A stretch of 64,000 bases of DNA from Pavona decussata (lineage: Eukaryota), in assembly GCA_977016875.1 (NCBI GenBank), contig CDRNST010000018.1:372001-436000 (forward strand), written 5' to 3'. A program made the position numbers and the translations under genes. Each line of letters begins with the position of its first letter. The first letter of the stretch is position 1. Positions 23,567 to 60,306 of this stretch are shown here, piece by piece. Under the pieces are notes generated by a model. It was given only the letters and a program-made list of their open reading frames with translations, was not told where the DNA came from and made no database searches.

Positions 23567-24915
23567 CTGGTCACGCTTTTGGCAGCTCTGCCGTAAGTGT
23601 GGCAAATTTCCTTGTTCCGTAGCCTTGATCGCCTGTTTTTTGTCGTTTGGTTTTGTTTTTAGTCGCTGCTTCCGCTGGAATACTTCTCTGGCCGGCCCGG
23701 TATGTTAGCTGGATTTTGTGACTGTTTTGTATTTTCGCCACGTAAGTCCAAGATGGCCGTTCCCCACAAAAAAAACGTTCCGTTTGGTTGTTGAGGAGTC
23801 TATGGAGGTGGATGCCATGTCCATTGTAAATGCTCTACCAGATTTCAGCGCCCAAATTGTTGGTGTCGTTCCACAGTTCAGGGGAAAGTGTTTCAACATT
23901 ACCCTCCGATCAGTGGATTCGGAGACACAACTGGCCACCGCCGGTTTCGATTACCTCAACGAAGTCAAACCTTTGCGGCTCTTGGGAGCCCGGACCATCC
24001 ATGTGTCTGTATTTATTTCTGTGGAATTTCCTGACAAGGACCTGGTGTCTTTCCTAAAGCAGTATGGTCAACGGAAGACCGAAAACCTTCGCCGCTTGTA
24101 CTACAGTGACGAGGAATAAGCACATATCGAACGCGGTACTCGCGTCGCAGAATTCGTATCACTCGACCGAGATCTTCCACGTAAGCTGGTGACACAGGGT
24201 CTCGAAAAATTTTTTTAAATATTCGGGACAACCTGTGTTGTGCTACCGTTGTGGGTCCACACACCACGTTGTAAAAGATTGTCCACTAACGCTGCGCGCA
24301 GCCAAGAGAGCCACGTGGGCCGGAATCCGGGGGAGAGACAGAGGCTGCTCAGACCACCCCTTCTACCCCTGATGAAACCGCATTGGACGCAGAAACATCG
24401 CCGACCACTAAACCCAATACACCACCTACATCTTCCTATTCTCCAGATACTCAAGCAACCCAAGCAACACCATAGGCTAGCTTTGCGGAAGCAGCCCACG
24501 CTACCCAGGAGCTCTTTACTGAGCCTCCAACTGAACCCTCGCGAAAGCGTGCCCTCCTGTCCACGGCTACAGGCGACCAGCCCGTGGCGAAAAAATCCAC
24601 GCAACCTTCGCCTGCTCCACGAAGCACCGCTAAACTCACGGATTTTCGGACAGATCTCTCCGGTAGAGTGGTGACCGTTAAAATCAATCTTGAAGGCAAG
24701 ACCCCTTAAATTATTAATGTTTATGCACCGAACAACCACTCGGACCGAAAAGAAGTTTTTTGATTCCTTGTGGCGTTTTTTGTTTAGTAATATTGGGTCT
24801 ATTTTTGCAGGCGATTTTAATTGCGTGCCGGATGTCACGCTAGATGATAGAGAGGCGATGACAGGTTTGGAAACAAAGCTGTATTGCAACTTCATTCGTT
24901 TACAAACGTTTACAA
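23567..24915 (+). mobile_element. Lineage B element 5' part (ORF1 and APE remnant), truncated by a deletion into the U1 upstream region
   Basis: ORF1 homologous to 9168-9700; NVYAPNN and AGDFNCVPD remnants. Confidence 0.85.
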
Positions 24916-24967
24916 CGGATATAGAGGTAAGGCAATTTTTCCGTTGTTGAGGGGCGCAAAGCATTTC

Positions 24968-39398: not shown

Positions 39399-39534
39399 TT
39401 CCCCTCAGGGAAGAAATAATCAGCTAAAAACAATTGAAATTGAATTGAACTTTGTGTCTCTCTCTCCCCATAGGATGTATGTAGAGGCAGGACACTGACA
39501 GGACAAGTCCCGGATCTGATGGCCACTAAAAGAA

Positions 39535-39595
39535 AAACCACAAGGGATATAGGGCTAAGGCAATTTTTCCGTTGTTGAGGGGCGCAAAGCATTTT
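39535..39595 (+). promoter_or_regulatory. U1 proximal upstream region (candidate PSE near -59 to -40)
   Basis: Conserved before all three U1 5' ends (24917-24967 partial, 39535-39595, 44602-44662). CCAC..AGG(G)CT occurs at the same offset before U2. PSE identity is inferred from position only. Confidence 0.45.
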
Positions 39596-39613
39596 ATACT
39601 TACCTGACACAGG
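39596..39613 (+). ncRNA. U1: U1 snRNA 5' fragment (nt 1-18), interrupted
   Basis: ATACTTACCTGACACAGG after the U1 upstream region. Confidence 0.9.
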
Positions 39614-42250
39614 TTTTTTTCTGGCAGTGTAAGTATCCGGTGCTTTTTGAGCTGAGAAGCTTTGCATCTTTGTGGTTCTTGTGAACTGCCTCCTGCCAAG
39701 GACTTTTATGCTTGGTCTCCTTTGGCCATAACTCGGGGTAAGCCGTTTCTTTTGCGCCAGCACCTGGCGAGCCTTCTTTCCCTTGCTGGATTTTGGGCTC
39801 TGTCAAGGGTTTTTTCCTTTTTCCCGCCCCTTTATTCTGGCGGGCCTGCTTACCTGTGTGTTTGTTTGGGCCTTGATCGGGATCCCTTTTCCCGCGTGCC
39901 ACCCATTCCGTTTTTTTACCTTGTTGGGTGAGCCTTAACTTTTCTCAGCCGCCCATCCAGTTTTCGGACCCTTTGGGCCGGGCTTAACCTTGGTAGTGTG
40001 TTTATTTAATTAGTGTTAAGTGAGTTAAGTAATTTATCTTGTAGGTGTGATAAACATTTAAGGTTTGTTACACAGGAATAAATTTAATAGTTTGTAGGTG
40101 TGATAAAAATTTAAGGTTTATTGCACAGGGAATTAATTAAATTTGTAAGTGTAATTAACGATTAAGGTTAATTACACAAGGAATTAATTTTGTAATTTGT
40201 AAGTGTAATTCACAATTAAGGTTAATTACACAAGGAATTAATTTTGTAATTTGTAGGTGTAATTAACAATTAAGTTTAATTACACAAGAAATAATTATTT
40301 GTTTTAAAGATGTCTTTCAGTCTCAATGTTCAGATTGGGAGAAAGCTTAATGGCAAGACTAAGGAAGATATCCTTAAACAGCTGCTTAATTATTTCCCTT
40401 GTGATGTTGTGGTGGCCGTCCAGATCGCTTATGAGGTGATTCCGGTCACTTTTAAAGATTCGACCTCTTACAAGCCGGGTATGGAGAAGATGGTGGACGT
40501 CTTTTCGGCATGTGGTGTCCCATTATGGGTACTGGTCCATCGGTTACGATCGTGCATGTCATCGATTTTCCTTTCGAGGAACAAGATTCCTTTATTGAGG
40601 AGGCGCTTCGTCCTTATGGCACAGTTAAAACCATTAAAAAGCAAACTTTTTTGGCCGAGGACAATATTTATACTGGGACAAGGTTGGTCTCTTATCATTA
40701 ATTCTCGCCCTCCCAGAGACCTCATGATCAAAGGATTCTTATGTCGGACCTGGTATCGTGGTCAGCCCCTGGTTTGTAATTTGTGTGCTGTTGAGGGGCA
40801 CCGCTCCGCCAATTGCCCGAACAAGGACAAGTGCTGGCTCTCCAGGATCCGATCTCATCTCTCTGGAAGTGTGGCTTCTGCTGGTGGGTCCGCTGATGTG
40901 GTTCCTCCGGCTGTGTCTGATGTTTCTGCTCCTGCTGGTGGCAGTTAGCGACATGGTTGACTCTCAAATCCCCACTGTACTGTGCGGTGACTTTAATGCC
41001 GTCTTTAATTGTCCCCTTGACCGGCGGGGGTCTAATGTCTTTGATGCTTTTCGTGAGAGTTTTCGTGCCCTGGCCTCCCTCTTTAGTGACTGCTGTGTCA
41101 TTGATGTGTGGCGTCAGCTGCACCCCGGTGTTTTTGCCTCGACTTGGATGCCCCTTTTCTTGGCTTCACTGTGTTTCCTTGTGTGAGATCTTACCTTGTC
41201 CGTTTTCTGATCACTCTGCTGTGTCCCTCAAAGTCTCCATCCCTTTGCCTTTGCCTCATGGCCCAGGAAGGTGGAAGCTGAATGCTTCCATTTTAAGGGA
41301 TGTTGATTTCATCTCCTCGCTCGATCGTTTTTGGAAACCTTGGAAGTTGCGTAAGGCCACATTTTCCTCTTTGCAAGCGTCGTGGGATAGCGGAAAGGAG
41401 CACATCAAGGGCCTTGCAATTCGTTTTAGTTGTGCCAAGAACAGGGATTTCCTCTCCTCGCGCTCTCTCTTGTTCTTTGGCGTCCTATTTAAAGGGTCGT
41501 ATTGACGCTGGGTCTGTATCCCTCATGGGCGTTTATGAGAATGTTCTGCAAAAGGTAAAAGATCTTGACGTGTTTCTGCGGAAGGTGCTCGCATCCCCTC
41601 TCGTGTCCAACGGGGAGAGGAGGGTGAGATGTTTTCCAAATTCTTTTTGCGATTGGAAAAGAACCCTGGTTCCGAAGATTGGATTTCTGCGATACGCAAG
41701 TCTGATGGGTCTTTGGCCACGGACATCTCCTCTTTTTGTTCATCCTGGGTTGACTTTTATTCTTCTCTTTTCTGGGCCGAGTCTCTTGTCGTCCCGATTC
41801 AAGATCAGCTTCTTTCCAATCTGACTACTCGCCTGTCTCCGCAAGATAGTGCCAAATGTGATGGTCCTCTCTCTCTAGATGAGGTTTTCAGGACCCTGGA
41901 GGGTGTGTCAGATGACAACTCTCCAGGCTCTGATGGTCTTCCTAAAGAATTTTATCTTGCCTGTTGGCACATTGCTGGTCCGGACCTCGTTGAGGTTCTT
42001 AATGATTCCTTTGCCTCCGGGTTGCTTCCTCTCTCTCAGAGAGGTGCCCTTATTTCCCTGATTTTTAAGAAGGGTGATCGCCTTGATCATAAGAACTGAC
42101 GGCCTATTAGCCTTTTGAAGGTTGATTTTAAATTGTGCCAGAACCCTTGCTGGTCGCCTCTTAAGTGTTCTGGGCTCAGTCGTTGCCCCTGAGCAAACTT
42201 GTGGTGTTAGGGGTCGTTTTATTGGCGAGAATGTTGTTTTTCTTTGGGAC
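39614..42250 (+). mobile_element. U1-targeting Tx1 element (type I 5' end); ORF1 from 40310, deleted APE/RT fragments, 3' end lost
   Basis: CNLCAVEGHRSANC, LCGDFN, FSDH, SPGSDGLP, QTCGV. Confidence 0.88.
40039..40288 (+). repeat. Five 51-54-bp palindromic tandem repeats in the element 5' UTR
   Basis: Units start at 40039, 40092, 40143, 40197, 40251; core GTGTAATTAAC..GTTAATTACAC. Confidence 0.9.
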
Positions 42251-44352
42251 CAGGCAATGTGATTAACACGCTCCCCGTAGGCGATCTTTCTGTCACTTCG
42301 ACAAAAGATATCCTTTGCGATTGTCACACATTTTCTTCTAAATTATATTCAGCTGAACCTGTTGACCTTCCCAGCCAAGATTGGCTTTAAGCTAACCTTT
42401 ACCGGTCGCTGACATCTGAAGATCAGCAGAAATGCGAAGGCCTTCCAACACTCTCGGAGTGTTATGAGGCTTTGGGCCAAATATCATCTGGCAAATCGCG
42501 AGGTGCCGATGGACTTCCGGTGGGATTTTATCGTCGTTTCTGGGGTTTGCTTGGCCAAGATTTAGTTGACATACTAAATTACTCTTTTACTCAAGGGGGA
42601 CTCTCTGACTAACAACGTCTCGGCATCATTCGTCTTCTATTTAAGGATGATGATCACTTGACGCTCAAAAACTGGCGTCCTATCTCTCTGCTTAACACGG
42701 ATTATAAAATATGCACAAAGGTTCTCGCTAATCGGTTATGCAAGGTTATTTCCCTTATCCTCTGCCAGGATTAAACTTGCGGGGTCCCTGACCGCAGTTT
42801 TTTTGAAAACTTGTTCCTTATTCAGGACACGATTGACAACGTCAATCACAAAGAGCTCTCGGCGGCTCTTATCAGCTTAGACCAAGAAAAAGCTTTTGAC
42901 AGGGTTAACCATGGCTTCCTTCGGTGGGTTTTAGAACATTTTAATTTCGGTCCTCACTTCAGGCGGTGGGTTATGATTGCATACACCAATATTAAATTGT
43001 GCGTTACTAATAATGGTTAGCTTTTGTGTCCTATCTCCCGGAGCATTGTGTCCATCAAGGTTGCCCGCTTAGCCCATTGTTGTATTGCCTAGTGATCGAG
43101 CCACTAGGGCAGGCTATACGTTGTGACTCGAGTACTGAGGGAATTTCAATCCCTGGCGCCAGCGGCAAACAGAGCAAAGTGTCTCAGTATGCCAATGATA
43201 CCACTCTAATATTAGCTAACAAGTTTACCATTACTAAAGCTTTAACCACTATTAACATTTTTGAAAAAGCCACTGGTTCTCGCCTCAATACACAGAAGAC
43301 TGAGGGCTTCTGGATAGATTCTAGCAAGGGCAGACCACCTGGCCCGGTGGACATCACTTGGGTTACCGACAAGCTTAAAATCCTTGGCGTGTATTTTGGC
43401 GTGAACTAGTGAACTTGATCGATCAACCGAGGCTCCGTTCGGATTCGCCGTTCGTATGGCCTGTTCCCTTGCGCTGGTTTTTAATCGGATTGGGCAGGTC
43501 ACTTGAAGTGTCTAGACCAAATTTATCCCCTTTTGTTTTTTTTTTCTTTTCGTTTTTGCTTTTTTGTTTGGCCCATTTTTCTTGGGAATTCCCTTGATGG
43601 GTTAATACAATTGAACAGCAGGGGGGGAGGGTTTAGGTTAGGATTTGGAGACCCTTAGTTTTTTATTTTGTCGCCTTTGCCGTACACGTCTAGAGTCTCT
43701 TTTTTCCATAGGTCCGCCTATGGCTTTTTTGTAGTCAATTCACTTCTTCCACCTTGTTATTAGCTTAACTGCATAACATTGTAAACTCCTGTTAACCATT
43801 ACTGGAGGAACCGTGTTATTGCTTAACTGCTTGGCATTGTACACTTGTAACCCACCTTGAGGATTGGCGGTCAAATCGCGTTATTCACCTACCTTAATGA
43901 TCGGAGGTCAAATCGCGTTAACTATTTATTTCACCTTGACAATGGGATAGTCAAATCGCGTTACCTTACAAGTTACTACTGTGGACCAAGTTCCCAGAAT
44001 TATTGTGGACATAGCTTCGAAACTGATTAACCAAGCACCAGTGCTGATTTACGACTGTTTCCCAAGAGAATTCTGTAGACAAAGCTCCGAGATTTTGCTG
44101 TGCACACACCTCCGAAATATTACTGTCACGGAAGAAACACTGCGCTGAATTTGCATAACCCTTGGGAATTGCGATCATGAGCATTGACACCTTTGGAACT
44201 TTTGAAATGGACTGGGCAGGGATTTAGAACATTGGACAATGCTTTTATACCGATGGAGACACTTGCTTTGTTAAATGGATAGACCCAGAAAAATTGCAAA
44301 ACTACCTAGAAAAATATAAAATAAAGGCTACACAAAGTGGCCGTAAAAAAAA
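42251..44352 (+). mobile_element. Lineage B element 3' half (RT and 3' UTR), ending at the U2 target
   Basis: RT homologous to 2974-3916; AATAAA at 44320; A-tail then GTACCTGTTCTT. Confidence 0.9.
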
Positions 44353-44504
44353 GTACCTGTTCTTATTACCTTAATATCTGATACGCTGCTCATTGAGCAG
44401 CTCATATATTAAACTGATTTTTGGAACTGGGCTGTGGAAAAGAGGCTTGCCTCTTCCCAGCCACGGGTTGCTAAGATATAGCACTACCTCCGAGCACAGC
44501 CCAC
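44353..44504 (+). ncRNA. U2: U2 snRNA 3' part (nt ~36 to end), diverged
   Basis: Colinear with 39249-39398; Sm site intact. Confidence 0.92.
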
Positions 44505-44662
44505 TTAATTGAACTTTGTGTGTCTCTCTCCCCATACGATGTATGTAGAGGCAGGACAGTAGTGACAGGACAAGTCCCGGATCTGATGGCCACTTAAAGT
44601 AAAACCACAAGGAATATAGGGGTAAGGCAATTTTTCCATTGTTGAGGGGCGCAAGGCATTTC

Positions 44663-44680
44663 ATAATTACCTGACGCGGG
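44663..44680 (+). ncRNA. U1: U1 snRNA 5' fragment (nt 1-18), left end of the split gene
   Basis: ATAATTACCTGACGCGGG after the U1 upstream region. Confidence 0.88.
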
Positions 44681-47600
44681 TTGCTTGGCCGAAGGCCCTA
44701 TCCTTTTGCGGAGAGGTTTTGGTTGAGCTTCCTTGGTAAGGATCGCCTCCACATGCTCCTTAGGCGTGTTTTGGTGGATCTTCATTGGCTGGTCACCCAT
44801 CCATTTTGTGGACCTGCGGATCAGTTCCTAACTTGCGTAAGTTTCCTTTGCTCACTGGGAGTGGCTCTCCCATCCCTTTTTGGGCCCCGCCCGTCAGGGC
44901 TTAACTTTTTTTTTCTTCCTTTTTTTCTTTCTTGTGTGTAGCTAGTCTACTCATTCTCGTACAGTTGTTGGGGTTTCCCTACGGTGTTTATCGTTTTGAT
45001 ATTGCCAAGGCTGTTTATGATCAGTTTTCTTCTGCGCATTCAGTGCAGTCAATTCAGGTTCTCCTGGGTGGCGTTTGTAAAGTTATGTTCGAGTCCCCGG
45101 AGTCTAAAAATTCTTTACTTGCTCATCCCACGTGTGTCATTAATGGTTTTGAGTGTCAAGTTTTAAACCATGCTCAGCGTTCTATCCAGGTTCAGGTCAA
45201 TCATTTCCCTGCTGAGGATGATGTTGCGCCCATGTTGGCTATTATGCGCTCCTATGGTGAAGTTGTGGATTATCGGTTCCAGGTTTGGCCGGGTATTCCT
45301 AGTGTGAATACTGGCACTTGGCCCTTCTGAGATAAAGCTCCAGCGTGACATCCCAGTTCTTTGCTGTGTGGGAAGTATCATCTTAAGACCTGGTATTGGG
45401 GTCAGCGCCTTGAGTGTAATATTCGTCAGGCAATCACAAAGCGGCTGATTGCGAGCTTGGTGGCAAATGTCGTCATATGAAGTCTGATGGCCATTTTGCA
45501 CCTGATTGTCCCATTCCTTGGGGTCATGTGGGTGCCCCCCCTGCCCCTGCTTCTGCTCTTGCCCTTGACCCTATTCTGGCTCCTGCTTCAGCCTCTGCCG
45601 CGGCTTCTGTTTCTGGTGCTGGCGCCCCTGAACCTACTCTGGTCATGGATTCCTCTGACACTTGTGACAATTAACTTAATGAGCTGGACAGTCAGGCTTC
45701 CCTCTCGCATGCTCCCTCTGCCGTTGATGAGGTTGATGTGGCGGACAGCGACATTCTTCTGGTTGCTGATTTACTTGCTTCCAATGATTGGGATATTACT
45801 GATAATGATAATACTGATAATGAAATGGAAAGGCTAACCAGTACTAACGTAGTTATTAGTGATGAAGTTACTGATAATGTAGTTTGTAATACCAATGATC
45901 GCGATAGGGTCTCTGGTGTTACTTGTAGCGATATAAGTAGTGATAAAAGTAGTGATAAGAATATCGGTGAAGTTACTGATAATGTAGTTTGTGATAGCGA
46001 TAGGGTCTCGAGTAATAGTTGTAGTGATAAAAGTAGTGCATTGCATGTCCGAAACTAGTTCTGTTACCCCTAACAACGTCGTGGGTGTATTGGAGGTTGG
46101 TCAAAATCCTGATGTGGACATGGATCCTCTGTCTGTTAAGCGTGCGGCCCCAGATGATTCATCTGAGCCCGACAGCGTGGATAGTGCTCCTATGGGTCCG
46201 CCCCCCCCCCCCCCCGAGTGTGTGTCCAAAGCTAGGAAGTCGAGACCGGTTGTTGTTGCCCCCCCTGCCAGGCGTGATCAGAGTCGTTCCTCTGTTGGCA
46301 GGACTCCTGCTCCTGGAAGGCATTCTTTTCCTCAGCAGTCAGTCTTCGCTCTTGAAGTCTACTCCCCAGAAGCGGTGATGGCGCCTGTGTCTGCTCTTTT
46401 TCTTCTTTGCCTGATGGCCTTGTCGGTCCTTTCTATTAATTGTAATGGTCTTCGTGACCCTCAGAAAAGATCTGGTTTCTTGCAGTGGTTGCGTGGTCTT
46501 CCGTGTACTGTTGATGTGGCTTGTGTTCAGGTGGCGCATTGTGTTTCGTCTGCGGAATATGAGTCTTGGTTTCGTTCATCTGGCCTGTCTTCTGTTGTGT
46601 CCCCTGGTTCAAATAAGTCCTGTGGTGGTGTTGTCCTTTTTCGTCCTGCGTTGTCTTTTGTTGAGTCATGGTCTGACTCTGATGGTCGTTTTTTGCAGTG
46701 TGAGTTTCAGTTCCGTGACAAATTGTTTCGTGTTGTTTCTCTGTATGCCCCAAATTGTAACCCTGCAAGACATCAGTTCTTTGAACTTGTCTCGTCCTTT
46801 GTCGATTCTTTTATTTCTACGGTTCTCTGTATACCATCTTTGATCGTGCGCTGGACCGTTAGAGCTCTGTTGTCTCCGACTATTCTCGTGATAGCTCGGC
46901 TGCGCTTGTTCAGCTCTTTGAGGAGTGTTGTGTCATTGATGTCTGGCGCTACCTGCAACCCTCCTCCTCTTGTTTTACGTGGTTCAGGCCTGATGGCTCT
47001 CTGTCGTCACGTATTGATCTAATCGGTTGTCCTTTTGTGTGGGTGTCCTCTGTTTCGTCTTGCGATATTGTTCCTTGTCCTTTTTCGGATCATTGTGCCG
47101 TTTTGTTTTGTGTCCATTCCCGATGTCGTTTCCCTTGGCCCTGGTTTGTGGAAGCTTAATGTTTCCATTCTTGAGGAGGAGGTCTTTGTTGGTCTTTTCA
47201 CCAATTTTTGGAAGGACTGGCAACGTCAAAGCACCGGTTTCCCTCTTTGGCAAAATGGTGGGAGGCTGGTAAGTCTGGTATCAAGGGGCTTTCCATTCGT
47301 TTTTGCTCCTTGCGGTCGTCGGCTTTCTCTGTCAAGAGAGATATTCTTTCCAAGTTGGCTTCGCATCTCAAGGAGAAGGTTGATCCTGGTTTTTTGTCTT
47401 TGTTCTGGACTTACCAGTCTGTCTCGTGTCAGCTGGCTGACCTTTACAAGGAGATTGCTTGGGGTGTGCAGGTGCGCGCCCGCGCACGTTGTCCCGTTTT
47501 TCTACTCTTTGCCCTGCTCTTCTCTGTCGTCATGTTCTTTTTGGTTTTTCTATGCTGAGCTTTGTGTTGCACTCTGCATTTTTGTTTATCTGTTAAATTT

Positions 47601-48372
47601 GCTTAAGTACTTTACTTGGCGTGCCCGAAACGATTTTCGTTTCCGTGGTGTTCGCCATGGTGCGGTCATTGTTATTGAGAATACCAAAGCGAGAGCTAAA
47701 TTCAACCTCCCGTTGTTTTTCAAGCGTTTTCGTTCTTCTCGCCGTCGTCACTTTTATCGCCAGTGGGGAGCCTGCAGTATTGTCGGTTCTGTTGATGGTG
47801 TGTTAAGTCTGGCCCTTTGGTCCCCCTTTTTTCTGCCCTGAGTGAGTGTGTCTTGTCCTGGTCGCCTTAGTTGGTTGTACTGGGCTTGCCCGAGTGTGTG
47901 TGTCTTTTGGATGTCCTTTAGACGGTCGCCTTAATTGATTGTACTGTCCTTGAGTGGGTGTGTATCTTGGATTTGTCATTTAGATGGTCGCCTTTGTTGG
48001 TTGTACTGTCGGACGGTCGCCTTAATTGGTTGGACTGTCTTTTGAGTGGGTGTGTTTTTTGGTCGTGTCGCTTGAGCATGTTTTTGGATGGTCGTCTTTG
48101 TTGGTGGTACTGTCTTTGCTTGAGTGGGTGTGTTTGTTTCTTGTGCCTCCCGCGTTTTAATTTTGTTCTTTTGTCCTGTCTTGTCCTGTTTTTGTTTGTC
48201 TTGTATTGTGTTTGTAGGGAGCGGGGTTCCATCCCCCGGTGACGTTTGACGTGCTGGTGCAACTCCCGTTTAAGGTGAACCCATTGTTGTGTGATGGGCT
48301 AAGTCGTATTTGTCTGGCAGGGATTGCACTCACCCTACCGGGGGCCTGGCCATTCACCTTAAACACGAAAAA
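44681..48372 (+). mobile_element. U1-targeting Tx1 element 1 (type II 5' end); ORF1, APE from 46414, RT deleted at ~47490, 3' UTR intact
   Basis: MALSVLSINCNGLRD, SLYAPN, GLWKLN; short A-tail followed by U1 target duplication. Confidence 0.9.
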
Positions 48373-48388
48373 CCTTACCTGATGCAGG

Positions 48389-51300
48389 TTTTTCCTGTTA
48401 GGGTAAGTATCCGGACCGTTTAAAGTCGAGAGACTTGGTCCCTGCTGTTTGACTTTCGGTGGATTTTCCCTTGTGGTAGGATTTTTGCTGTTTTGCCGAT
48501 CAGGTTATTTGGCGCGCCATGTGCTCCTCGGGCCTTCCTTCTCTTGGTAGATTGTGGGCCTTGTGGGGGTGTTACTGCGCTGTTTTGTTTTTTTTCTAGC
48601 GTCCTTCCCTTTTGGGTTGGGGGCTATTGTTATTTGGTGCCTAGTGTGCTTCCCGGGCCTTCTTTTCCTTGCTGAATTCCAGCCCTTGTGGAGGTGTTCC
48701 TGCACTGTTTGTGGTCAAGTGTACCACATTTACTATAAACTGTAGGTGGTTTAAGAACCACCAGCGTGAAAACGTATGTGGTGGTCACGGTTCCCCCATT
48801 ATTACTAGTAAGTGGTCAAGGTACCACAAGTGTAAGGTTAAGCTATAATATTTAAAGGAATATTTAATTAATGGAAAGTTAAAGGATATAACTATGTCCA
48901 ACCAAAAAACTGGTGTTCTCCAGCAAAAATTTTCCCTCCTCTGCTACTAAGGAGGATATTGCTAAAAAATTCCACATGGAATTTCAGGGGCGATTTGAAA
49001 TTTTTGCAATCCAGGTTAAGCCTGGTAATGTGATTGCGGTGACGTCTAGGTCTGCTGAGGCTAAAAAAGCGTTGACTAAAAATCAGTATATGGATGTTGA
49101 TGGCATTGTTTGCCCCGTTCTAAATTATGTACCTTCCACTACTCTGGTAATGGTTCATTACTTCCCGATTGAGGCTGATGGTAAACCCCTCTACAACCAG
49201 TTAAGTCAGTATGGTCAAGTTGTTGGGTCTCGATTTCAAGTTTGGATTCACCTGGGTGAGATATCTACTGGAACTCAGCTCTACAATATGCATTTGAACT
49301 GCGATGTCCCTCGTTCCCCCACGGTCAAGGGTCACTGTGTTAAAACTTGGTACAAGGGGCAGCACCTTACGTGTGATATTTGCGGTGGGTGCCATAAGGC
49401 CGCCCAGTGTGATCTGCGTGGCAAGTGTCGTCGCTGTAAATCTGAAGGCCATTTTGCTAAGGATTGTCCTACCTCGTGGGGCAAAAGTGCTCCTGCCCCA
49501 GCGCCTACTACAACTGGGTCCGATCCTACCCCAGCGGAAGCCGCAGGCCAAAGTGAGGAGACTTCTCAGCCTCCGGTTGTTGCTGTGGATAGTGCGAGTG
49601 TTGTTGAAGATGGTGCCAATCAGCCTACCGGTGCTGTGGATAGTGCGGCTGGTGCCAGCCAGTATATGAATTGTGCGGTTGATAGCGAAGATGGTGCTAG
49701 TCAGTCCATTCTTGCTGGTGTTGAAGTGCCAGCTGTTCAGCTTGTCGATAATAGTGGTGATGTGGGTGTTTTGAGTGGTAGTGGTCAGTCTGTTGACCTA
49801 CGGGATAACCAATTGGATAAATTACCATCTGCGGATGTCGTAGTTTCTGATGTTCCAGTCGTTACTGTTTTGAGTGAAGGAGACAGTTTGGCAAATGTTG
49901 ATTTGGGCGATGTTTTGAATTCAGGTAAGTCCCTTGGTCATCTCTCCGTTTCCCAGCGCGGTGGTGTTGTCTCTTTGTCCTTTAAGAAGAGTGACCGCCT
50001 TGACCCCCGTAATTGGCGTCCAATCAACCTGCTTAATGTGGATTACAAGATTGCGTCTCGTGCTATCGCAGCCCGCCTCCTTCGTGTCATCCATCTGGTA
50101 GTTGCTAAGGATCAGACGCGCAGTGTTCCCGGTCGCTTTATTGGGGAGAATGTTGCCTTCCTGAGGGATGTCGTTGACTTCTGCTCACTCTCTGGCTCTC
50201 CGGTGACGATCCTCTTGTTGGACCAGGAGAAGGCTTTCGATAGGGTTGACAGGGGCTTTTTGTGTAATACCCTCGAGGTCATGGGGTTTGGTCCATCCTT
50301 CGTTGACTGGGTGTTGCTCTTTTCTTCTAATGTTGAGAGCTCGGTTAATGTGAACAGTTATCTCTGGGATTTTTTCTCCTTGTCTTGTGGGGTGCGGCAA
50401 GGCTGTCCGTTATCCCCCCTTCTCTATTTTCTTTGGCGCGGAGGTGATAGCCTGTAACATCCATGTTAATCCATCTATTCGTGGTCTGTCCCTACCTGGC
50501 TTCGATTCCCCCCTGCCATGTATCTCGCAGTATGTGGATGATACCACTCTGGTTGTCACCAGTGATCCGGCTATTACAGAAGTTTCCGAAGTCTACCATG
50601 TTTTTGAGAGTGGTTCCAGTGCAAAGCTGAACCTCTCCAAGAGTGAAGGCCTCTGGCTGGGGTCATGGAATGGTCGTGTGGATGCCCCGGTTGACATCTC
50701 CTGGACCTCCGTGAAGATAAAAGTCCTTGGTGTGTTTATTGGTCCCAATGACTTGGAGGAAGCAAATTGGCATTCATGTATCACTGCCGTCAAGAATGTT
50801 TTAAGCTCTTGGCGTCAGCGCTCGCTTTCTCTCTGTGGGAAGGCTTTGGTCATCAATGCCCTTGCCCTAGCCCGCATTTGGTATGTGGCCTCCTTAATCC
50901 ATGTTCCCTCCACTGTCATTAAAGAGATCAACTCTTTGGCCTTCAAATTTTTCTAGAGGGGCAAGGGGGATCTTGTTCCTCGTCATGTTGTTGTTCAGCC
51001 CTTCTCCCAGGGTGGCCACTCAGTTGTTGATTTTTTGTGTAAGTGTAGGGCTTTCCATGTTCAGTGCGTCTGTCGGTTGTCCGTGTCCCCTTCCTCGTGG
51101 GTATCATTCCTGACTTATTGGTCTTTTGTGTTTTCCTATCCATTCTTTTTTGATGTTAGCTCCATGCCCCCCTTTTACCGTTCTCTGTTTAAGGCTTGGG
51201 GCGCTTGTGATGGTTCCAAAACGGCCTCATCTCTCGGCATCGGAGTAGGTATTGACTGTTGCCCAGTTGAGTCCATCACCACCAAATCGGCTTATCTTTA

Positions 51301-52257
51301 CCAGGTGTTAGATACTGCCCGTCCCGCACATTGTTAAGTCAAGTTCTTTCCTACTTTTGGTCTTCTGTATTGGCCTGCTACCTGGAGGCAGTTGTTTTTC
51401 TTTCCCCTTGATCGCTCTGTTATTGATCTGAATTGGAAGCTGGCCCACAGGGTTTTGTACACGGCTCAGCGTCTTGCCTCCTTTGGTTATGACCTCTCTA
51501 CTGTGTTTTTGTACTCACCCTGTGGAGTCCTCTGAGCACCTGTTTTTTTGTTGCCCCTTTGCGGACAGTGTGTTGTCATGGGTGCAATCGTTGATGTTCT
51601 CCGCCTCTCCCCTCTGTCCCAATTTGCTCCTTCGTCACCTCCTGTTTGGCTTCTCAGAGGATGAGCTTCTTTGTCTCCCACGTTTCTTTGTCTATCTTCT
51701 TGGCGTCTGCAAGTTCTTCATTTGCTGTGCCCGTAATGATTTTTGGTTTCGTGATGTTCGCCCTTCAGCTATTGATGTCATTGAGAGTGTCAAGGCCCGG
51801 GTCCATTTTTACTTGCCTTTGTTCTTTTGGTGGGTTTCAGTCCAGTCGCCGCCAGTGGTTTTTTGTTCGTCATTGGGGTGCCCATGGGGTCGTGGCCTCT
51901 ATTGTGGATTCCCGTTTGGTTGTTCACCTCTAGTTCCCGGCCCTTTCTGTTGTGTCTCTGCTTGCCAGAGCGAGTGTGTCGTCCTGCTAAGCTTCCGTTT
52001 TTGAGTGAGTGTGTCTGTGTTTTGCCTCCCGCGTTTTTAACTTGTTTTATTGTCCTGGCTTGTCTTGTTTGTGTTTGTCCTGTAGCAATGTTTGTAGGGA
52101 GCGGGGTTCTATCCCCCGGTGACGTTTGACATGCTGGTGCACCTCCCGTTTAAGATGAACCCCTCGTTCGTCTGTTTGTTGGGATGAGTCTGTCTGTCTG
52201 GGGGCCATTGCACTCACCCTACTGGGGCGCCAGCCATTTGCCTTAACCATGAAAAAA
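48389..52257 (+). mobile_element. U1-targeting Tx1 element 2 (type I 5' end); ORF1 joined to RT by deletion of APE
   Basis: CDICGGCHKAAQC, CRRCKSEGHFAKDC, NWRPINLLN, LDQEKAFD, YVDD. Flanked by CTTACCTGATGCAGG (48374-48388) and CTTACCTGACGC (52258-52269). Confidence 0.92.
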
Positions 52258-55200
52258 CTTACCTGACGCTCTTGTCTGGCCGGAGGCCCTACTCTTTTGT
52301 GGAGAGGTCATTAGCCATTTAGCTTGGGTAGTGGATCGCTTCCTCGTACTTTTTGGGCGTGGGATTTGTTGCTTATTGGCTGGTCATCCTCCAGTATGGA
52401 GACCTTGGGATTTAACCTTAATGTTTGGATCTTCATTTTGGTGAGCGGTTTTTCTTTCTTTTTCTCATCTTTTTTTTCTCTGGGGGTTGTTGCCTTTCGG
52501 TTTGGCGTTTATCACTATGCCGCGTGGCGCCTTTAACCGGACGGTGACGCTCAAACTTGAGTGATTCCTGTCATCAGTTTCTCGTGCTGATACTGTTAAG
52601 GCCATCAAAGATCATTTTGTTGGATATACTATTTTGTCTGTTCAATTCACCCCTGGTAATCGTGCTCAGGTTACTTTTGAACGTGCTGAGCAGAAGGAGT
52701 TTATTGAAACCCTTGAATCCGTGTCTCTTGGTGACATTGAATGTAGGGTCGTTGGTGGGGGGCCTCGCCCGCAATTTGGGCATGTTTTCCAGTATCCCTT
52801 TGAGGCGGATGATAATCTTCTTATGAGGAATTTTAAGAAGTTTAAGGATGTGCTGGGTCTCAGTCATCAGCATTATCCGGATCATAATTAAATTTGCACT
52901 GGTGTCTGTTTATTGCATATTGTTCGTTCAGCTCCCATTCCTCGTAATGCAGATGTTGGGGGCTGGGCTGTTAATGTTTGGCACAAAGGCATGTCCCCTG
53001 AGTGCTATATCTGTGGGCAGGGTCATGTTGCTAAGGATTGCCCTTTCCGCAGCAAGTGTCGGCTGTGTCGTCAACCTGGGCATATTAGTCGTAACTGTAG
53101 GAATGTGCCGTCTGCTTGGGATTCGTCAGAGCCTGGTGTTGATCCATAAGTGTATATGGATCCTACCCCGGCTGAGGCGGCTGCATCTGCTTCTGGTTCT
53201 CTTGGTGTGGCGTCTTTTTCTTCTTCTGCCATCGTGCATCCTACCAATGCTGTTTCTTTCCACTCAGATGGATGTCAATTGTCCTGTGGATGTGGTCTCC
53301 GCCCCTACTGATGCCGCTGCACCCTCCACTGGCTCTCCTGAGGCTGCGTTGTTTTCTTCGTCTGAAAGTGTTTCTGTTGATTTGAGGGACAATGAGTTGT
53401 CCCCTGATCTGTTTTCGCATGATGACCTTCCCGTTGGTGAAGGCACTACCGTCTTGTCTGGCTCTGATAAATTGGCAGGGTGTGTCAGCTTCACTGTCAA
53501 TGAGTTTGGCAGTGAGGCTAGTCCCTCTGTTTTAAATTCTGCATGTAATTCAATTATTGATGTTACTTCCGCTATAAGCAGCGGAGTGACTTATTCTTGT
53601 TCTGTTTCCTCCGCTAAGAAGAGTGGTGGTATTAATACTAAAGTTTGTAATGCTGTTACTGATAATTCCAATGTAAGCAGCGGACGAATTAATGCTAGTG
53701 ATAAACTTAATGATAATCCCACTGAAAGCAGTGGGGGGGGGGGGGGTTAAACCTAGTTCTGTTAATTCCGCTAAAAAGAGCGGTGGTGTTATTTCTAAGG
53801 ATGATAATAACTTAACTAGTAATCCCGCTGTAAGCAGCGGAGGGTCTAATCGTAGTGATAACTTTACTGATAATCCCGCGGTAAGCAGCGGCGTTTGCTA
53901 TGACAATACTGTACTTTCACCTGCCCCTTCCTCGGTCCTGTCCCAGTCTATCTTGCCTGTTGTCCCCCCTTTGCCTTCCTCTGAGGACTTTCCTGTGCCA
54001 CGTGGTCGTGCTCCCCGGCGTACTTCTAAGCCTACTCATCCTGATCATAGTCGTTCTCGCTCCTGGTCTGGCGCGTCAGGTCGGTCTGAGAAGCGCCCTG
54101 CTGCCTCTCATAAGATGCCTGCTTATGTCAAGTCTGTTCCTTCATGCCCTTAATTTGCTTCCTTTATGGCAGTCTTTTTCTTTTTGATGGCTCTGTCCAT
54201 AGTCTCGCTCAACTGTGACGGGATTTGTGACAATACTAAGCGTGCTGGTCTTGTGCAGTGGTTACGTTCTTTGGCTGTGGTTGCTATTGTTATTTGTCTT
54301 CAGGAGACACATTTTTCCTCAGTTAGTGAGTGTTCGTCTTGGTTTGCTTCCTCTGGTTTGTCATGTGTGTTGTCTCCTGGTTCTACCAGGTCTTGTGGTT
54401 GTGTGATTTTGTACCGTCCTTGTTTGTCTCTTGTTCAGTCACGATGTGATTCTGACGTTCGCTTTTCTTCAGTGTGAGGTTCTCCTTCGTGGTCATTCAT
54501 GTTGCCTGTCTTTATGCACCAAATCGTAATTCTGCACCAGATGAATTCTTTAATGATATCTCTTCTATTGTTGACCCTACTGTGCAGACCGTTCTCTGCG
54601 GCGACTTTAACACTGTTTTTGATCGGTCGCTTGACTTGTTTGATTCAGTGGTGGGTGATCAATCACGCAAGAGTTCTGTTGCTCTTGGCCAACTTTTTGA
54701 CTCCTGTTGTGTCCTTGACATCTGAAGGTATCTTCACCTATCGTCCTCTGGCTTTACCTGGTCCAGGTGGGATGGCTCATTGTCTTCTCGTATTGATCTT
54801 GTTGGTTGTCCTTATTCTTGGGTTGCGTCTGTGTCGTCTTGTGAGATATTTTCTTGTCCTTTTTCTGATCATTGTGCTGTCCAATTTTGCGTTTCTGTCC
54901 CTGATGTTGTTCCACTTGGTCCGGGTTTATGGAAACAGAACACCTCTAACCTTGAGGACTACGCTTACATTGAGTCTGTATCTTCCTTCTGGCTTTCCTG
55001 GAAGTGCCGCCAGTTGGATTTCCCTTCCTTGGCCGGGTGGTGGGAGGAGGGGAAGAGTCGTATCAAGGGCCTCACTATCTGTTATTGTGTTTCCCGTGCT
55101 CAGTTGTGCTTGCAGTCTCGTGATCTCCTTGTTCCTCTAGTTGATCAACTCAGTCCCGTGTGGACAGTGGTGTTGTTTCTTGCATTGGGCCATACCGGTC

Positions 55201-57042
55201 TGCCTTAGCTCAGCTTGCCAAGTATGATCTAGATGCTGTGGGGGTGCGCAGGTTCTTTCTCGGGTAAGATAGGTTGAGGAAGGTGAGTCTTGGCTTACTT
55301 CTTTCGCCTTGAGAAGTGGGCTGCTGATCGTTGGATCTCTGCTTTGAGAGAAGATGATGGTTCTGTTATTTCTAATCCTGATCAATTATGTCGTTCTTTC
55401 TCTGGTTTCTATTCTTCGTTGTTTACCTGGTGTCCCACTGATCCTGTTGCTTGTGATCTTCTTTTGGATAATTTGTCCTCTGTCCTCCCTTCTGACCAGC
55501 CTAAGGTCTGTGATGGCCCGCTTTCCCTTGGTGAATGTTATTCTGCCCTTTGTGGGATGGCTAAGCGTAAAGCCCCTGGGCTGGATGGCCTCCCATTGGA
55601 GTTCTATGTCAAATTCTGGAGTGTCCTTGGTTCTGATCTTGTTTCTGTTTTGAATTCGTGCTATGATTCTGGTCGTTTGTCTTTCTCTCAACATAGGGGT
55701 GTTATTGCTCTTTCTTTTAAGAGGGGTGATCGCCTTGATCCTCGTAACTGGAGGCCGATCACCCTTCTTAACGTTGATTATAAACTTACATCGCGTGTAA
55801 TTGCTGGTCGACTGCTCAAAGTCATTCATCTTGTTGTCGCTGTAGACCAGAAGTGTGGTGTTCCTGGATGCTACATTGGTGACAATGTGGCTTTTTTGCG
55901 GGACGTTGTTGATTATGCTACCTTGTCCAACGTTCCTGTTGCTGTTCCTACTCTTCACCAGGAAAAGGCCTTTGACCGTGTTGATTAGGATGTTATGCGG
56001 GCAACCTTGCTCAAGATCGGTTTTGGCCCTTCCTTTCTTTGGTGGGTTGACCTGTTTTACTGCGGAGTTTAAAGTTGTGTTAATGTTAATGGTTACCTTT
56101 CCTCGTTTTTTCTTTGTCTCGTGGTGTGCTTCAAGGTTGTCCTCTTTCTCCTTTGCTGGATGTTCTTGAGTCTTAAGTCCTGGAGGCCAATATTCATGTC
56201 AATCCCCGGGTCAAGGGTCTTTGTCTTCCTGGTCTTTCTGAGCCACTTTCTCCTATATCCCAATACACTGATGCCACCTCTCTATTTCTCACGTCTGATG
56301 ACTCTATATTGGCCACCTTTGAGGTTTATGCTGTTTTTGAGAGAGGTTCTGGGTCCAAGCTCAATCAGGCTAAATCTAAGGGCTTGTGGCTTGGTCCCTG
56401 GTCTGGTCGTGTTGATCCACCGGTTGCGCTTGATTGGTCTTCCACTAAAGTGAAGATCCTTGGTGTTTTCGTTGGTCCTGGGTGACCTTGAGCAAAATAA
56501 CTAGCCGCCGCGCATTTCCACTGTTGATGTTAGGTATAGGAACTATAAGTACGCGCCTCTCAAGGGACTGGACACGAGATGTGTCGTCAAGATGACAAGT
56601 GACGTAAGGAGAAGCCATGTGCGTGCTCGAGAAGCAAAATAGACTCGCGTTGTGAAAATAAGTTGTGAAACCGTAATTTAATATCGTAAATACTCTTGGA
56701 AAACACCAAGCAGTGTGGATTTTCTTGTGTAACATTCTGGGGGCCTGTCCGGGAGATTTTTCTCGAAGAAACTTGATGGAAATGTACCCGTTTTGACGAT
56801 CGATTGCTTACTGTGTGCGAGGACTCGCGTTTGTCGCCGCCATTACGCATTCACTTTGGATTTCAATGGACAACGATTTATTAACAGGATTTAACTGGTT
56901 GTAGTTGAAGCGGACATTTGGTGTGGACAGTTTGGCAAAAGATAGTGGAGCCTGAATTTGAGGCCAGGGAAGGTAGGAACATTGTTTTATTGGACTTTGT
57001 GCATGTGGAAATCTGTTCGTGTTGTTTACAAGTAAAATTGAA

Positions 57043-58378
57043 ATGGCGGAGGAACAACTGATTCTTCTGGATCGCAAAATTTTGTCGCTGGACCTGAGTG
57101 CGTTTTGTGAATTTGCTCTTCATGCTAAAGTTGAAAAGTCGGCAGTAGAAGGCAAGGGGAAATTAAGTGTTATTCGGTCTATCAGACGAAATATTGAGGA
57201 TTCATTCGAGAAGTTGTCTGGCGTTGATCAAATTGAATTTGTTAAGGGGTTAATTGCACAGTTGGGTCCTGAAGAAGCTCAAAAAAGAATTGGGTGATTT
57301 AGAGTCTAAGCAGCAATTAGTCGAGGAACAATTGGCCAAAATGCAGAAAGAAAAGTTTCCTGCCTCAGTGAAAGACGAAGACACGATCAAGTTTCCTGCC
57401 AAGGGGGTTGAGCAAAGCATATTCCGCAGGGATTTCAAAATACAAGGAGTGGTGGGTGACCCTGGTCAGAAAGATAAACTGGGTTATCAAGCTCTAATAT
57501 CCCAAATAGAATCAGGGCTTGCCAAGGGGTACTCAGACAAAGAAGTAGTTAGTGCCGTTGTTCATGCTGTGCAGCCAGGCCTGCAACTAAGAAGCTACCT
57601 AGAGAACATGACTGACCTGACCCTACCCAGGCTGCGTAAAATTCTTCGCTTCCATTTTCATGAGAAAAATGCCACAGAACTTTACCAGCTTCGAACAAAC
57701 ATTGCCCAACAACCCAATGAAGACCCTCAGTCATTTCTGATGAGAGCACTCACTATTAGGCAAGAGGTAATTAGTGCTTCAAAAGAGTCCGATAGTGGGG
57801 TTAAGTACGATGCCTCCTCGGTGCAAAGTTTGTTCCTGCATGCCTTGGAAACCGGTCTTGCTGACGAAACCATTCGTGCAAAGATAAGACCACTCACTCA
57901 GAACCCAAAAGTCGCAGATGAAGACCGCATTGGAGCAATGAGCCTAGCTATATCTGCAGAAGCTGAGCGAAGTAATAAGTTCAGTTTTACCAGCAAGGGA
58001 AAGTCTGCAAAGGTTCTCACCGTTGAAGGTGCAGTGGAAGCAAACACGAAGAAGGAGTCGCAGAAGGACTCACAGGTCCTAGCAACACTAAAAGCTGTAC
58101 AAGCGGAGCTGGCCACAGTGAAATCAGAAGTTAAAACTCTTCATGACGTAGCAAATAACCAGAAGGCAGACACCATGGCACCTGGTCCTACTGGGAGGGG
58201 AGCGAGGGCTGGAGCAAGACCACCTGGTTGCCAAGAGTGTAGAATGAATAGGAAAGGTGACCGATGTCCACATTGCTGTCTCTGTGGAGGCTTGAACCAT
58301 ATTGCCCGCTACTGTCAAACCAGGCTCAGAAGCTATCCGGGAAACGCATCCAGGCTACCCCCGCGGGACAGGGAGTAG
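57043..58378 (+). pseudogene. gag: gag-like ORF with C-terminal CCHC knuckle (one frameshift near 57285)
   Basis: MAEEQL start; QQPNEDPQSFLMR major-homology-like motif; CCLCGGLNHIARYC. Confidence 0.8.
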
Positions 58379-58380
58379 CC
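58339..58380 (+). promoter_or_regulatory. -1 programmed ribosomal frameshift signal
   Basis: In-phase G_GGA_AAC (58339-58345), 7-nt spacer, hairpin GGCTAC-CCC..GGG-A-GTAGCC (58353-58380). Confidence 0.85.
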
Positions 58381-58407
58381 TTGCCAGAGAAAGAGAAGTC
58401 CCACCAG

Positions 58408-58530
58408 TGTAGTGGTTGCCTGGAGTTTGATTGCCGTAAACAGTTGCTACAGTGTTCAGCCTGCCAGTCTGTTCGATATTGTTCTGAGCATTGTCAAAAG
58501 GTTCATTGGCCAAAACATAAAGTGTTATGC
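58408..58530 (+). CDS. MYND-type zinc finger in the -1 (pol) frame
   Basis: CSGC-x11-CSAC-x5-CSEHCQKVHWPKHKVLC matches the zf-MYND pattern CxxC..CxxC..YCS..CQ..HW..HK..C. Confidence 0.88.
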
Positions 58531-60144
58531 AAAGCAATCAAAGAGTTCTCTGAGAGAGAATCGTCTAAAGAAAAGTAGTTAGGAGATGCACAAGATAGAG
58601 ATGGTATGTGGTCTGTAAGGAGCTGGGCCTGATCAACCCACTCCAGGATTTAAGAAGCAAGGAATCATAAACAAAAAAGGCCACTTTCGTAAAGTTTTGT
58701 TCTGTATTGCATGCCAAATGGGAGAGAGGGGAGAGTGTTAGGTATAGGAACCATAAGTACGCGCCTCTCAAGGGACTGGACACGAGATGTGTCATCAAGA
58801 CGACAAGTGACGTAAGGAGAAGCCATGTGCGTGCTCGAGAAGCAAAAAAGACTCGCGTTGTGAAAATGAGTTGTGAAACTGTATTTTAATATCGTAAATA
58901 CTCTTGGAAAACACCAAACAGTGTGGATTTTCTTGTGTAACATTGAGAACACTCTTGCTGCTTGGAAGGGCCGTTCCTTATCGTAGAGGGGTAGAGCCCT
59001 TATGATCAATGCCCAAATCTCTTGTTCACATGCGCTCTTGGGTTTTGTCTGAACTGTGCAATTTTGGTACGAAGTTCCATCCGCTGCAAGATGAAGCCAC
59101 TTTCGTGGATGAGCAAATAAAGGTCGAAGTACTTCGGTATAAGTTGTATATTTTCTCTTGTCACATTAATGTGAACCTAGCTCAATTATATCATCTTGCA
59201 GGCTAACTGATGAACAAAATAATGTTTTACGCATTACTGAAAAAGGCCACAACAAGGTCAGCTGGCTGGTAAAGAACTGCACTTAGCCAGAAGGGGGTGT
59301 GTGTGGTTTGTTACGTGCCAAACGCTTCCCGTGGATTTCCCCAGCTGGGAACATTTTAGTACTCGTGCCTCAGTTTGACCGTGAGTTTCTTCCAACATTC
59401 CAGGGACACGGCTCAGACGGCGGCAAAAAAGGCACCCGATTTGAAATGAAGTTTGTTTTCAACTAAGGCCGGTGTCTCAATAAATGAACTCCTCTGTAAA
59501 TGAGCTACCCAGGAGGGACCGCACATCATTCTCCTTGCCATATGGTAAGGCAGGTAGGCGAGAGCTTAAGTTTCAAGCAAATTTTAGCGAGGTTTTTGAA
59601 GTGCTGTCCTTAAATGACCGGCCAAATTTCATTGAAATTCAACTTGTAGTTTCCTACCTTTCCATTAACATAATACAGTGATGTACGTGGACCAGCTGCC
59701 GAGAGATAAACCGCTCAAAACAGCGTTTGGAAGCACTGAAGAGCATTGAAAACACAACAAAACACACCGGGTAAGCCTTTTCAGACTTAAGTATATTTTT
59801 GTTGGGTTTTTTAGGGAAAATTGTTGTCTAAATTTCGATTTAATTTTAACTCCATACAAACTCTTAAATCACGCTTGCATGGTAACCTGTGTCACATACG
59901 CTTTGGTGACCTGTGGTAGCACTGGAGTGCTTGAGTGAGTGTGTTTTTGCTTTTTAACTTGTTCTATTGTCCTGTCTTGTCCTGTTTTTGATTGTTATGT
60001 ATTGTGTTTGTTGGGAGCGGGGTTCCATCCCCCAATGAGGTTTGACGTGCTGGTGCCCCTCCCGTTTAAGGTGATGTTTGTATTTGTCTGGTGGCCATTG
60101 CACTTTTCCACTGGGGGGCCAGCAATTCACCTTTATAACAAAAA

Positions 60145-60306
60145 ACTTACCTGACGCAGGAGGTACTGTGATCAAGGAGGCAGTCCTCTCAAGGTGGTGC
60201 CCTTTCATTGCACTTCGATTGGGTTGACCCTTGTGATTACCCCAAATGTGGGTAACTCGAGCTTATAATTTCTGGTAGTGGGGACCTGCGTTCGCCCTAG
60301 TCTCCG
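60145..60306 (+). ncRNA. U1: U1 snRNA nt 3 to end, right end of the split gene
   Basis: ACTTACCTGACGCAGGAGGTACTGTGATCAAGGAG..CATTGCAC..AATTTCTGG; followed by the same downstream flank as 25132. Confidence 0.93.

Follow-up and report, generated by a model that had tools for sequence, protein, structure and literature searches.

Several transposons insert specifically into small nuclear RNA (snRNA) genes, namely Keno and Utopia in U2 genes, Dada-U1 and Dada-U6 (PMC4640811). The targets reported for Tx1 elements are U2, U5 and 5S genes, satellites and transposons (PMC4494074). Repbase aside, neither paper describes a Tx1 element targeting U1 genes or an element leader antisense to its own target flank. 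For R2, ribozymes cut up to 36 nt upstream in the 28S rRNA, and the 28S tag that stays on the RNA is the postulated source of uniform junctions (PMC3774820); insertion mediated by R2 becomes more efficient with stable 5′ folds (PMC11331408). Here we analyze a 64-kb section of a eukaryotic snRNA/5S gene array ("the window") in the 602-Mb genome of the coral Pavona decussata (contig CDRNST010000018.1, hereafter C18, positions 372001-436000). Two elements of the window, el-1 and el-2 (elements 1 and 2), each lie directly behind bases from the 5′ end of U1 (nt 1-18 and nt 4-18, respectively) and begin with a short leader that is an imperfect antisense of U1 nt 1-18. Their coordinates are given in Table 1.

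By their domains and junctions, el-1, el-2 and their relatives are Tx1-clade retrotransposons without long terminal repeats (LTRs) that are specific to U1 snRNA genes. The second open reading frame (ORF2) of the close relatives L065, L069 and L070 contains Exo_endo_phos, RVT_1 and zf-RVT domains, fragments of which are found in the window, and ORF1 carries a CCHC zinc knuckle. In el-2, Pfam zf-CCHC and RVT_1 both fall within 48913-50457, and amino-acid identity to L065 ORF1/ORF2 is 67-88%. The best named homologues are annotated 'Transposon TX1 uncharacterized 149 kDa protein' in Stylophora pistillata, and contigs with related sequences were found in coral metagenomes and in Desmophyllum. Clade placement by tree refers to an ORF1 tree of coral sequences only. 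Young copies near the start of C18 show the complete arrangement, with the promoter and U1 nt 1-18, the element, a short A-run and then U1 from nt 4 to its end (nt 4-164). The insertion point is therefore behind U1 nt 18, where 15 bp of the target (nt 4-18) are duplicated, and the host U1 promoter and nt 1-18 consequently stay immediately upstream of the element. The window, the young copies and five further coral contigs agree in placing the 5′ junction at U1 nt 15-18 and the 3′ junction at nt 4. The 5′ junction is uniformly at nt 18 in el-1, el-2, el-3, IIa, IIc, IId, G, H and D (lineage labels as used below). Diverse U1-targeting lineages exist in corals.

In the leader module of el-1 and el-2, which we call type I, a U-run precedes an imperfect antisense of U1 nt 1-18 (its core is GTAAGTATCC), and a second hairpin follows. 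Flank, U-run and antisense segment are predicted to form a first RNA hairpin (SL1) of -14.7 kcal/mol in element 1 (39596-39636; z -4.29) and of -15.8 kcal/mol in element 2 (48374-48410; z -4.62), with 0/200 dinucleotide shuffles as good in either case. When the native flank is joined to them, the leaders of el-1, el-2 and el-3 are predicted to pair with U1 nt 1-9 (P about 0.7-1.0). The contiguous anti-U1 run is 8 in el-1 (p 0.003 against shuffles) and 10 in el-2 (p 0.003). The 12-mer GTAAGTATCCGG, identical between the two elements, is their invariant core, and GTAAGTAT with the G that precedes it is a perfect extended splice donor. The type I folds include G-U pairs and are therefore specific to the sense strand. 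The U-run was also considered as an Sm site, and rejected as it has no A before it and no G after it; a Pol III terminator or initiator was considered and rejected as well.

A preliminary description of this DNA had reported the U1 bases, the T-run and the antisense at both elements, and the letters agree at both positions; its weaker match in a type II element is likewise present (44735-44743). The description of the segment as a near reverse complement of U1 nt 1-18 applies to the GTAAGTAT side, the only strong part of the helix. The remainder is imperfect, with 4-5 pairs including G-U in the loop-proximal half. The middle bases that differ between the two flanks had been read as pairing retained despite change. 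The flank variants ACACAGG and ATGCAGG are instead CG>CA/TG decay of disabled U1 copies (native ACGCGGG), and therefore no co-evolution or covariation of flank and element is involved. A start just downstream of a U1 promoter was borne out for element 1; element 2 is preceded by the 3′ untranslated region (UTR) and A-run of another element and by U1 nt 4-18.

The sequences identify the antisense-U1 leader as a heritable module and not a copy-specific fold-back. In pattern searches of the genome, type I 5′ ends were found only at el-1, at el-2 and at seven copies of a third element, el-3, with other matches at control level; the el-1 leader used as a DNA query against its own genome retrieved nothing beyond itself. 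The seven near-identical el-3 copies (C18:8-105 kb; 2.09 kb each) are ORF1-only with an intact frame of 500-512 amino acids. From their spacing they are probably in part segmental duplicates, not separate insertions. Their predicted hairpin has -13.0 kcal/mol (z -2.8). El-3 is a recombinant, el-2-like over its first ~169 nt and IIc-like beyond, and its ORF1 groups with that of IIc at 100/99 support. An el-2-like leader thus sits on a IIc-type body, and the leader therefore moves as a module. The ORF1s of el-1 and el-2 sit in different well-supported clades, and the el-1 proteins are just 34-50% identical to those of L065, a close relative of el-2. With el-3 included, three ORF1 clades of this genome carry the motif, one of them having gained it by a leader swap. 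A search for closer relatives of el-1 gave a best ORF1 identity of about 40%. One further el-2-like copy (L192) is 5′-truncated, and L193 and L196-L198 yielded no junction. As a separate observation, el-3 (L033:59-2148) and IIc (L033:4146-6217) are both ~2.1-kb ORF1-only elements with intact ORF1 that differ essentially in the first 110-170 nt; both multiplied in the array and are possibly non-autonomous.

The second hairpin (SL2) appears to keep its outer helix through double changes, GGACC/GGTCC in el-2, GGTGC/GCATC in el-1 and AGACC/GGTCT in el-3, and its inner helix reads AGTC/GACT, AGCT/AGCT and AGTT/GACT. These compensatory pairs were identified by eye from 3-4 sequences and minimum free energy (MFE) folds, and MAFFT shifts the 3′ strand of SL2 by one column between el-1 and el-2. 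The predicted leader fold is two simple hairpins and not a nested double pseudoknot. Rfam gave no ribozyme match, either across the window with its gathering threshold or at E<=5 within 39500-40100 and 48300-48920. A microRNA precursor was also rejected, the only match being mir-2778, whose 21.4 bits (E 0.15) fall below the gathering score of 86.

The hairpin with its T-loop occurs in none of the 5′ ends from other coral assemblies and metagenomes, all of which are joined at U1 nt 15-18. Anti-U1 segments recur further inside these leaders. Runs against U1 nt 1-9 that are significant within the first 110 nt were found in el-1, el-2, E1-E3 and H (p 0.003-0.047): in E1-E3 as GGTGAGTGT at +62 to +65 (p 0.003-0.02), and in H as GTAAGTAT at +79 (p 0.047). 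Other lineages are weak. The Desmophyllum leader has GGTAAGT at +93, and IIa and IId have GGTAAG at +55. Lineage G, from another coral, carries at +20 a weaker, el-3-like anti-U1 segment, GGGATAGTATC, which is not significant for G alone; its core reads GGATAGTAT, so that GT is lost and the flanking complementarity kept. In MFE and partition-function folds the downstream anti-U1 runs pair with U1 nt 1-9 and so enclose a domain of 40-90 nt, and the native flank stabilizes the leader beyond scrambled flanks in 14/14 U1 leaders (z -0.4 to -4.1). The U1 junction is absent from L199 and L207, while L205 and L206 are 5′-truncated at U1 nt 10. A pattern scan of metagenomes gave chance matches only; one look-alike (L072) is the coding sequence of a bacterial or phage ATPase and has no Rfam match. 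The E-lineage leaders also contain a sense copy of U1 nt 11-17 (GACGCGG) exactly 10 nt past the nt-15 junction (L067:3670, L070:167, L071:463), which points to an inherited filler at the junction or to an earlier register of it.

A parallel, drawn from controls in the same genome, is provided by elements specific to U2 genes, which insert after U2 nt 47 with a 12-13-bp duplication and a poly-A tail (L033:7820-8887, equal to C18:16119-17186; L201-L204). Two of these, K1 and K3, carry CAGATAC/CAGATGC ... CACTTGATC ~14-37 nt into the element, which is the antisense of U2 nt 36-42 and 25-33. The leader-flank duplex has z -4.2 and -5.0 in K1 and K3, and the gain from the native flank z -7.3 and -5.4. 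The predicted fold zips U2 nt 25-42 and leaves the native U2 stem-loop I intact, and an A>G change in K3 keeps the pairing as a wobble. No cross-signal was obtained when U1 leaders were set against the U2 flank or K leaders against U1. The U2 version does not resemble a branch site and places an internal loop on U34/A35 of the GUAGUA recognition sequence. An antisense-of-flank leader thus appears to be a target-specific and general phenomenon. Since the U2 leaders contain equivalent antisense, the general device would be a target-complementary leader that zips the read-in snRNA fragment, and the donor-like look of the U1 version would need nothing more than complementarity to U1 nt 1-9.

From the anatomy, target specificity and heritability of the leaders, from their predicted folds and from the U2 parallel we infer co-transcription and a function of the following kind, to which we give an even chance: the target-complementary 5′ leader closes the co-transcribed snRNA fragment, and its likeness to a splice donor is a by-product. 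An RNA that begins at the start site of U1 would carry U1 nt 1-18 ahead of the leader, and the two would pair into a closed 5′-terminal hairpin of -13 to -16 kcal/mol. Such a hairpin may be a compact, nuclease-resistant 5′ module that stabilizes the 5′ end of the template. It may also keep a target-derived tag on the template, whose cDNA would anneal to the upstream target and so give the uniform nt-18 junction. Both benefits are plausible because of the analogy with R2. Masking of the sequences with which U1 recognizes 5′ splice sites and with which U2 recognizes the branch point would follow automatically, and may or may not be a selected effect. The complementarity extends 5′ of the duplicated region, to U1 nt 1-3 and to U2 nt 25-33. 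These bases are double-stranded at the target but present on a co-transcript, and pairing in cis between RNA and RNA is therefore the most economical explanation.

Several points weigh against this proposal. The leaders of type II, F and IIb have weak or no complementarity, and K2 has only the 7-mer CTTGATC at about +57 (anti-U2 25-31) and starts with a long hairpin of its own. El-3, the youngest type I sublineage, reads GGCTAGTAT, with GT lost and two mismatches in the core, and the module is therefore not indispensable. The 5′ strand of SL1 is invariant U1, so that SL1 cannot covary. The ten lineages combine by Fisher's method to 7e-5, a value that overstates the evidence owing to their shared ancestry. 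Promoters of the snRNA type make long transcripts poorly, element 2 and the other members of its insertion train are not adjacent to a promoter, and a cap-proximal hairpin is expected to hinder cap-dependent translation. The sequencing runs consulted were assembled Logan contigs, none recorded as RNA, of which four runs were inspected. The putative RNA runs X1, X6 and X17 are scraps of depth 2-30, with 0 contigs bridging 39596-39640. An X6 contig (39525-39608) passes from 70 nt of U1 upstream sequence into native U1, which is due either to DNA carried over or to transcription that reads through the array.

Other explanations accommodate part of these data. The antisense core could be a site acting in trans, either as the 5′ splice site of a leader intron or as a promoter-proximal U1 small nuclear ribonucleoprotein (snRNP) site guarding the long transcript against early termination or polyadenylation. 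The perfect extended donor formed by GTAAGTAT fits this, as does the recurrence of runs resembling 5′ splice sites (GGTGAGTGT, GGTAAGT, GGTAAGG) in E, H, D and II leaders, and the varying distance of the runs suits a site in trans as well as a helix in cis. We nevertheless consider it unlikely, because resemblance to a donor is automatic for any complement of U1 nt 1-9 and the U2 analogue is not like a branch site. Consensus-like donors are present in el-1, el-2, H and E, but GT is not conserved across the family: it is lost in el-3 (GGCTAGTAT; 7 copies, intact ORF1) and in G (GGATAGTAT), both of which keep the flanking complementarity. A U1 tag in cis would moreover sequester the site in the co-transcript. 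No joint at 39628/39629 was seen in the contigs of the four runs, which is weak evidence given their near-zero RNA coverage. The same leaders could act at the level of DNA, where the 5′ end of the template RNA would pair with single-stranded top-strand U1 nt 4-18 upstream and so be tethered beside the free 3′ OH; the polymerase would pass from RNA to target DNA, giving a precise junction without co-transcription. The preliminary description had named help in 5′ joining during integration as its alternative. The order of flank, short U loop and antisense has the geometry of a nicked hairpin, the nt-18 junctions are uniform in the nine lineages listed above, and promoterless members of a train would be served too. 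This route is improbable in view of the complementarity beyond the duplicated single-stranded region (U1 nt 1-3 and especially U2 nt 25-33), of the antisense lying 60-100 nt inside the element in E, H and D, too distant to juxtapose the ends, and of K2, which keeps solely the anti-U2 25-31 motif. We also know of no biochemical precedent for it in elements with an apurinic/apyrimidinic endonuclease (APE).

The inverted U1 piece might on the other hand be a non-functional scar, a palindromic junction from one aberrant integration or repair event that was inherited and is slowly decaying. A local hairpin confined to few lineages, poor complementarity in its loop-proximal half and the decayed core of el-3 would all be expected of a scar, and many successful U1-targeting lineages (II, F) manage without a local hairpin. 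This account is doubtful in the face of an independent parallel in U2-targeting elements, including the wobble-preserving change in K3, and of a 12-mer kept across different ORF1 clades in leaders that are otherwise dissimilar. The leader module also moved to a different body, in a recombinant that then spread, and it is linked to an apparently covarying SL2. It is similarly not likely, in our estimate, that the anti-flank leader is a short, evolvable RNA guide fitted to the snRNA gene parasitized (U1 nt 1-18, U2 nt 25-42), which besides closing the co-transcript takes part in target choice or 5′ joining, through the nascent snRNA or the unwound target. It would then be an RNA-guided part of an APE-type LINE (long interspersed nuclear element), re-programmed at a switch of target and exchanged as a module. 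Closure of the co-transcribed snRNA fragment by the leader remains the reading that we prefer. The preliminary interpretation as a whole is partly supported. The leader proved not to be a fold-back of one copy, since el-1, el-2 and the seven copies of el-3 all carry it. That only the donor 8-mer might be conserved is half true: el-1 and el-2 share GTAAGTATCCGG, while el-3 and G drop GT and keep the flanking complementarity. Hiding a sequence able to pair with host donors, the purpose put forward there, is not the most economical reading of the leader.

Intact tandem arrays elsewhere in the genome have a 1979-bp unit of U1(+), 5S(-), U2(+) and a 195-nt spacer, and the native U1 start in this genome is ATACTTACCTGACGCGGG. 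A weak Rfam U1 match covers 39596-39648. The truncated end of el-1 abuts the 3′ end of a U2-specific element, followed by U2 from nt ~30 onward at about 44340. Further downstream lies an insertion train that reads promoter, U1(1-18), IIa, U1(4-18), el-2, U1(4-15), IIb, U1 body. The block at 48120-48373 was ruled out as a second type of U1 promoter, being the common 3′ UTR of the elements. Nested in IIb (56528-58944) are 209-bp direct repeats, 96% identical, around ~2 kb with an ORF for a MYND finger (58264-58578), an arrangement of LTR type. The U1 gene at 24968 looks intact, with only ~55 nt of native upstream sequence; beyond (24500-24967) lies an APE-coding fragment of another LINE, and this gene may be without a distal promoter element. 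An insertion of another kind splits a U1 gene after nt 10 at L195:670 (C18:242269), reading CTTACCT|TAATAGTG. The 3′ UTRs of the U1-targeting elements all hold GCATTGCAC, which is placed in a predicted loop and equals the heptamer in the loop of U1 stem-loop II (window 48313-48345, 52190-52230 and 60090-60120; L033:2100-2140). In the long 5′ UTRs of the el-1 clade, the stretch that separates ORF1 from the leader hairpins contains 30-100-nt tandem repeats (window 40020-40300; L200:1500-2500).

Table 1. Features of the window discussed in the text (positions are those of the 64-kb stretch).
Feature	Position	Strand	Remarks
Rfam matches in the window			U1 at 24968 and 60143; U2 3′ parts at 39226 and 44316 (44316-44509); 2x 5S; 1x tRNA
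Proximal U1 promoter region ahead of element 1	39541..39595	+	Near-identical to upstream of intact U1s in the native 1979-bp U1-5S-U2 unit
U1 nt 1-18, 5′ flank of element 1	39596..39613	+	ATACTTACCTGACACAGG; two CpG-type changes relative to native ACGCGGG
Element 1 (el-1)	39614..43400	+	Degenerate Tx1-clade element, 3′-truncated; tblastn with L065 ORF1/ORF2; RVT_1 at 43026-43409
T7 run, first bases of element 1, predicted hairpin loop	39614..39620	+	
Imperfect antisense of U1 nt 1-18, CTGGCAGTGTAAGTAT	39621..39636	+	GTAAGTAT at 39629-39636 complementary to U1 nt 1-8
SL2 of element 1	39639..39668	+	GGTGC...AGCT gaga AGCT...GCATC; MFE fold
U1 nt 1-18 behind a genuine promoter, 5′ flank of IIa	44663..44680	+	
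Type II element IIa	44681-48373	+	
GGTAAGGAT in the IIa leader (+55)	44735..44743	+	Predicted pairing with U1 nt 4-9, P about 0.7; weak on its own, p 0.12
Shared 3′ UTR of IIa, ending in A-run	48120..48373	+	Homologous to 52001-52255, 59931-60142 and 3′ ends of young copies abutting U1 nt 4
Duplicated U1 nt 4-18 (target-site duplication copy) ahead of element 2	48374..48388	+	
Element 2 (el-2)	48389..52257	+	Tx1-clade; internal deletion fuses ORF1 (CCHC knuckle) to the reverse transcriptase region
Element 2 leader	48389..48410	+	T5 loop 48389-48393; antisense U1 CCTGTTAGGGTAAGTAT at 48394-48410
SL2 of element 2	48413..48441	+	GGACC...AGTC gaga GACT.GGTCC; MFE fold
U1 nt 4-15, then IIb, then rest of U1 body	52258..60306	+	IIb 52270-60142 with nested LTR element; U1 body 60143-60306

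These elements add U1 genes to the targets of Tx1; the papers cited here list no retrotransposon of U1 genes, only the DNA transposon Dada-U1 (PMC4640811). If the proposed mechanism is true, the leaders are sequence-level evidence that APE-type LINEs of snRNA genes live on read-in from the host promoter, as R2 does in rDNA, and they represent a ribozyme-free route to a structured 5′ module made from the co-transcribed target. The rule that the leader complements the upstream flank is simple and testable, and bears on current work to engineer 5′ modules for gene insertion with site-specific retrotransposons. Masking also raises the question of whether a parasite of spliceosomal RNA genes must neutralize the snRNA fragment that it transcribes.

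Compared with a spliceosomal 5′ splice site or U1 snRNP site, GGGTAAGTAT and GTGTAAGTAT fit the extended donor consensus and complement U1 nt 1-9. In contrast to such a site, however, the complementarity here runs on to U1 nt 15-18, GT is lost in el-3 and G, no joint was seen in the sparse contigs, and the U2 elements show equal logic with a sequence that is not a splice signal. In R2, the 5′ sequence of the element reportedly pairs with the co-transcribed upstream target (stem P1 of the ribozyme). The leaders resemble the HDV-like (hepatitis delta virus-like) ribozyme system at the R2 5′ end (Eickbush et al. 2013, PMC3774820; Palm et al. 2024, PMC11331408) in the proposed read-in from a host gene, in the postulated link between a retained target tag and uniform 5′ junctions, and in the predicted stable 5′ fold, which in the R2 data improves insertion. 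They differ in being simple U-loop hairpins, with no double pseudoknot and no Rfam ribozyme match. The RNA 5′ end would here come from RNA polymerase II initiation at U1 +1, making cleavage unnecessary, and the endonuclease is of the APE type and not restriction-like. SINEU (Kojima 2015, PMC4494074) is likewise a Tx1-dependent mobile RNA with snRNA-derived 5′ sequence, but its snRNA part is sense and makes up most of the element, whereas what is inherited in the U1 elements is a short antisense piece, the sense copy being part of the target. The closest relatives are Keno and other target-specific Tx1 elements (Kojima & Fujiwara 2004; PMC4494074, PMC4640811), with which the U1 elements share APE, reverse transcriptase and zf-RVT in ORF2, CCHC in ORF1, strict insertion into a multicopy small-RNA gene, a short target-site duplication and head-to-tail trains. 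They differ from these in their target, the U1 gene after nt 18 instead of U2, U5, 5S or repeats, and in the logic of the leader, which appears to be previously undescribed in target-specific Tx1 LINEs.

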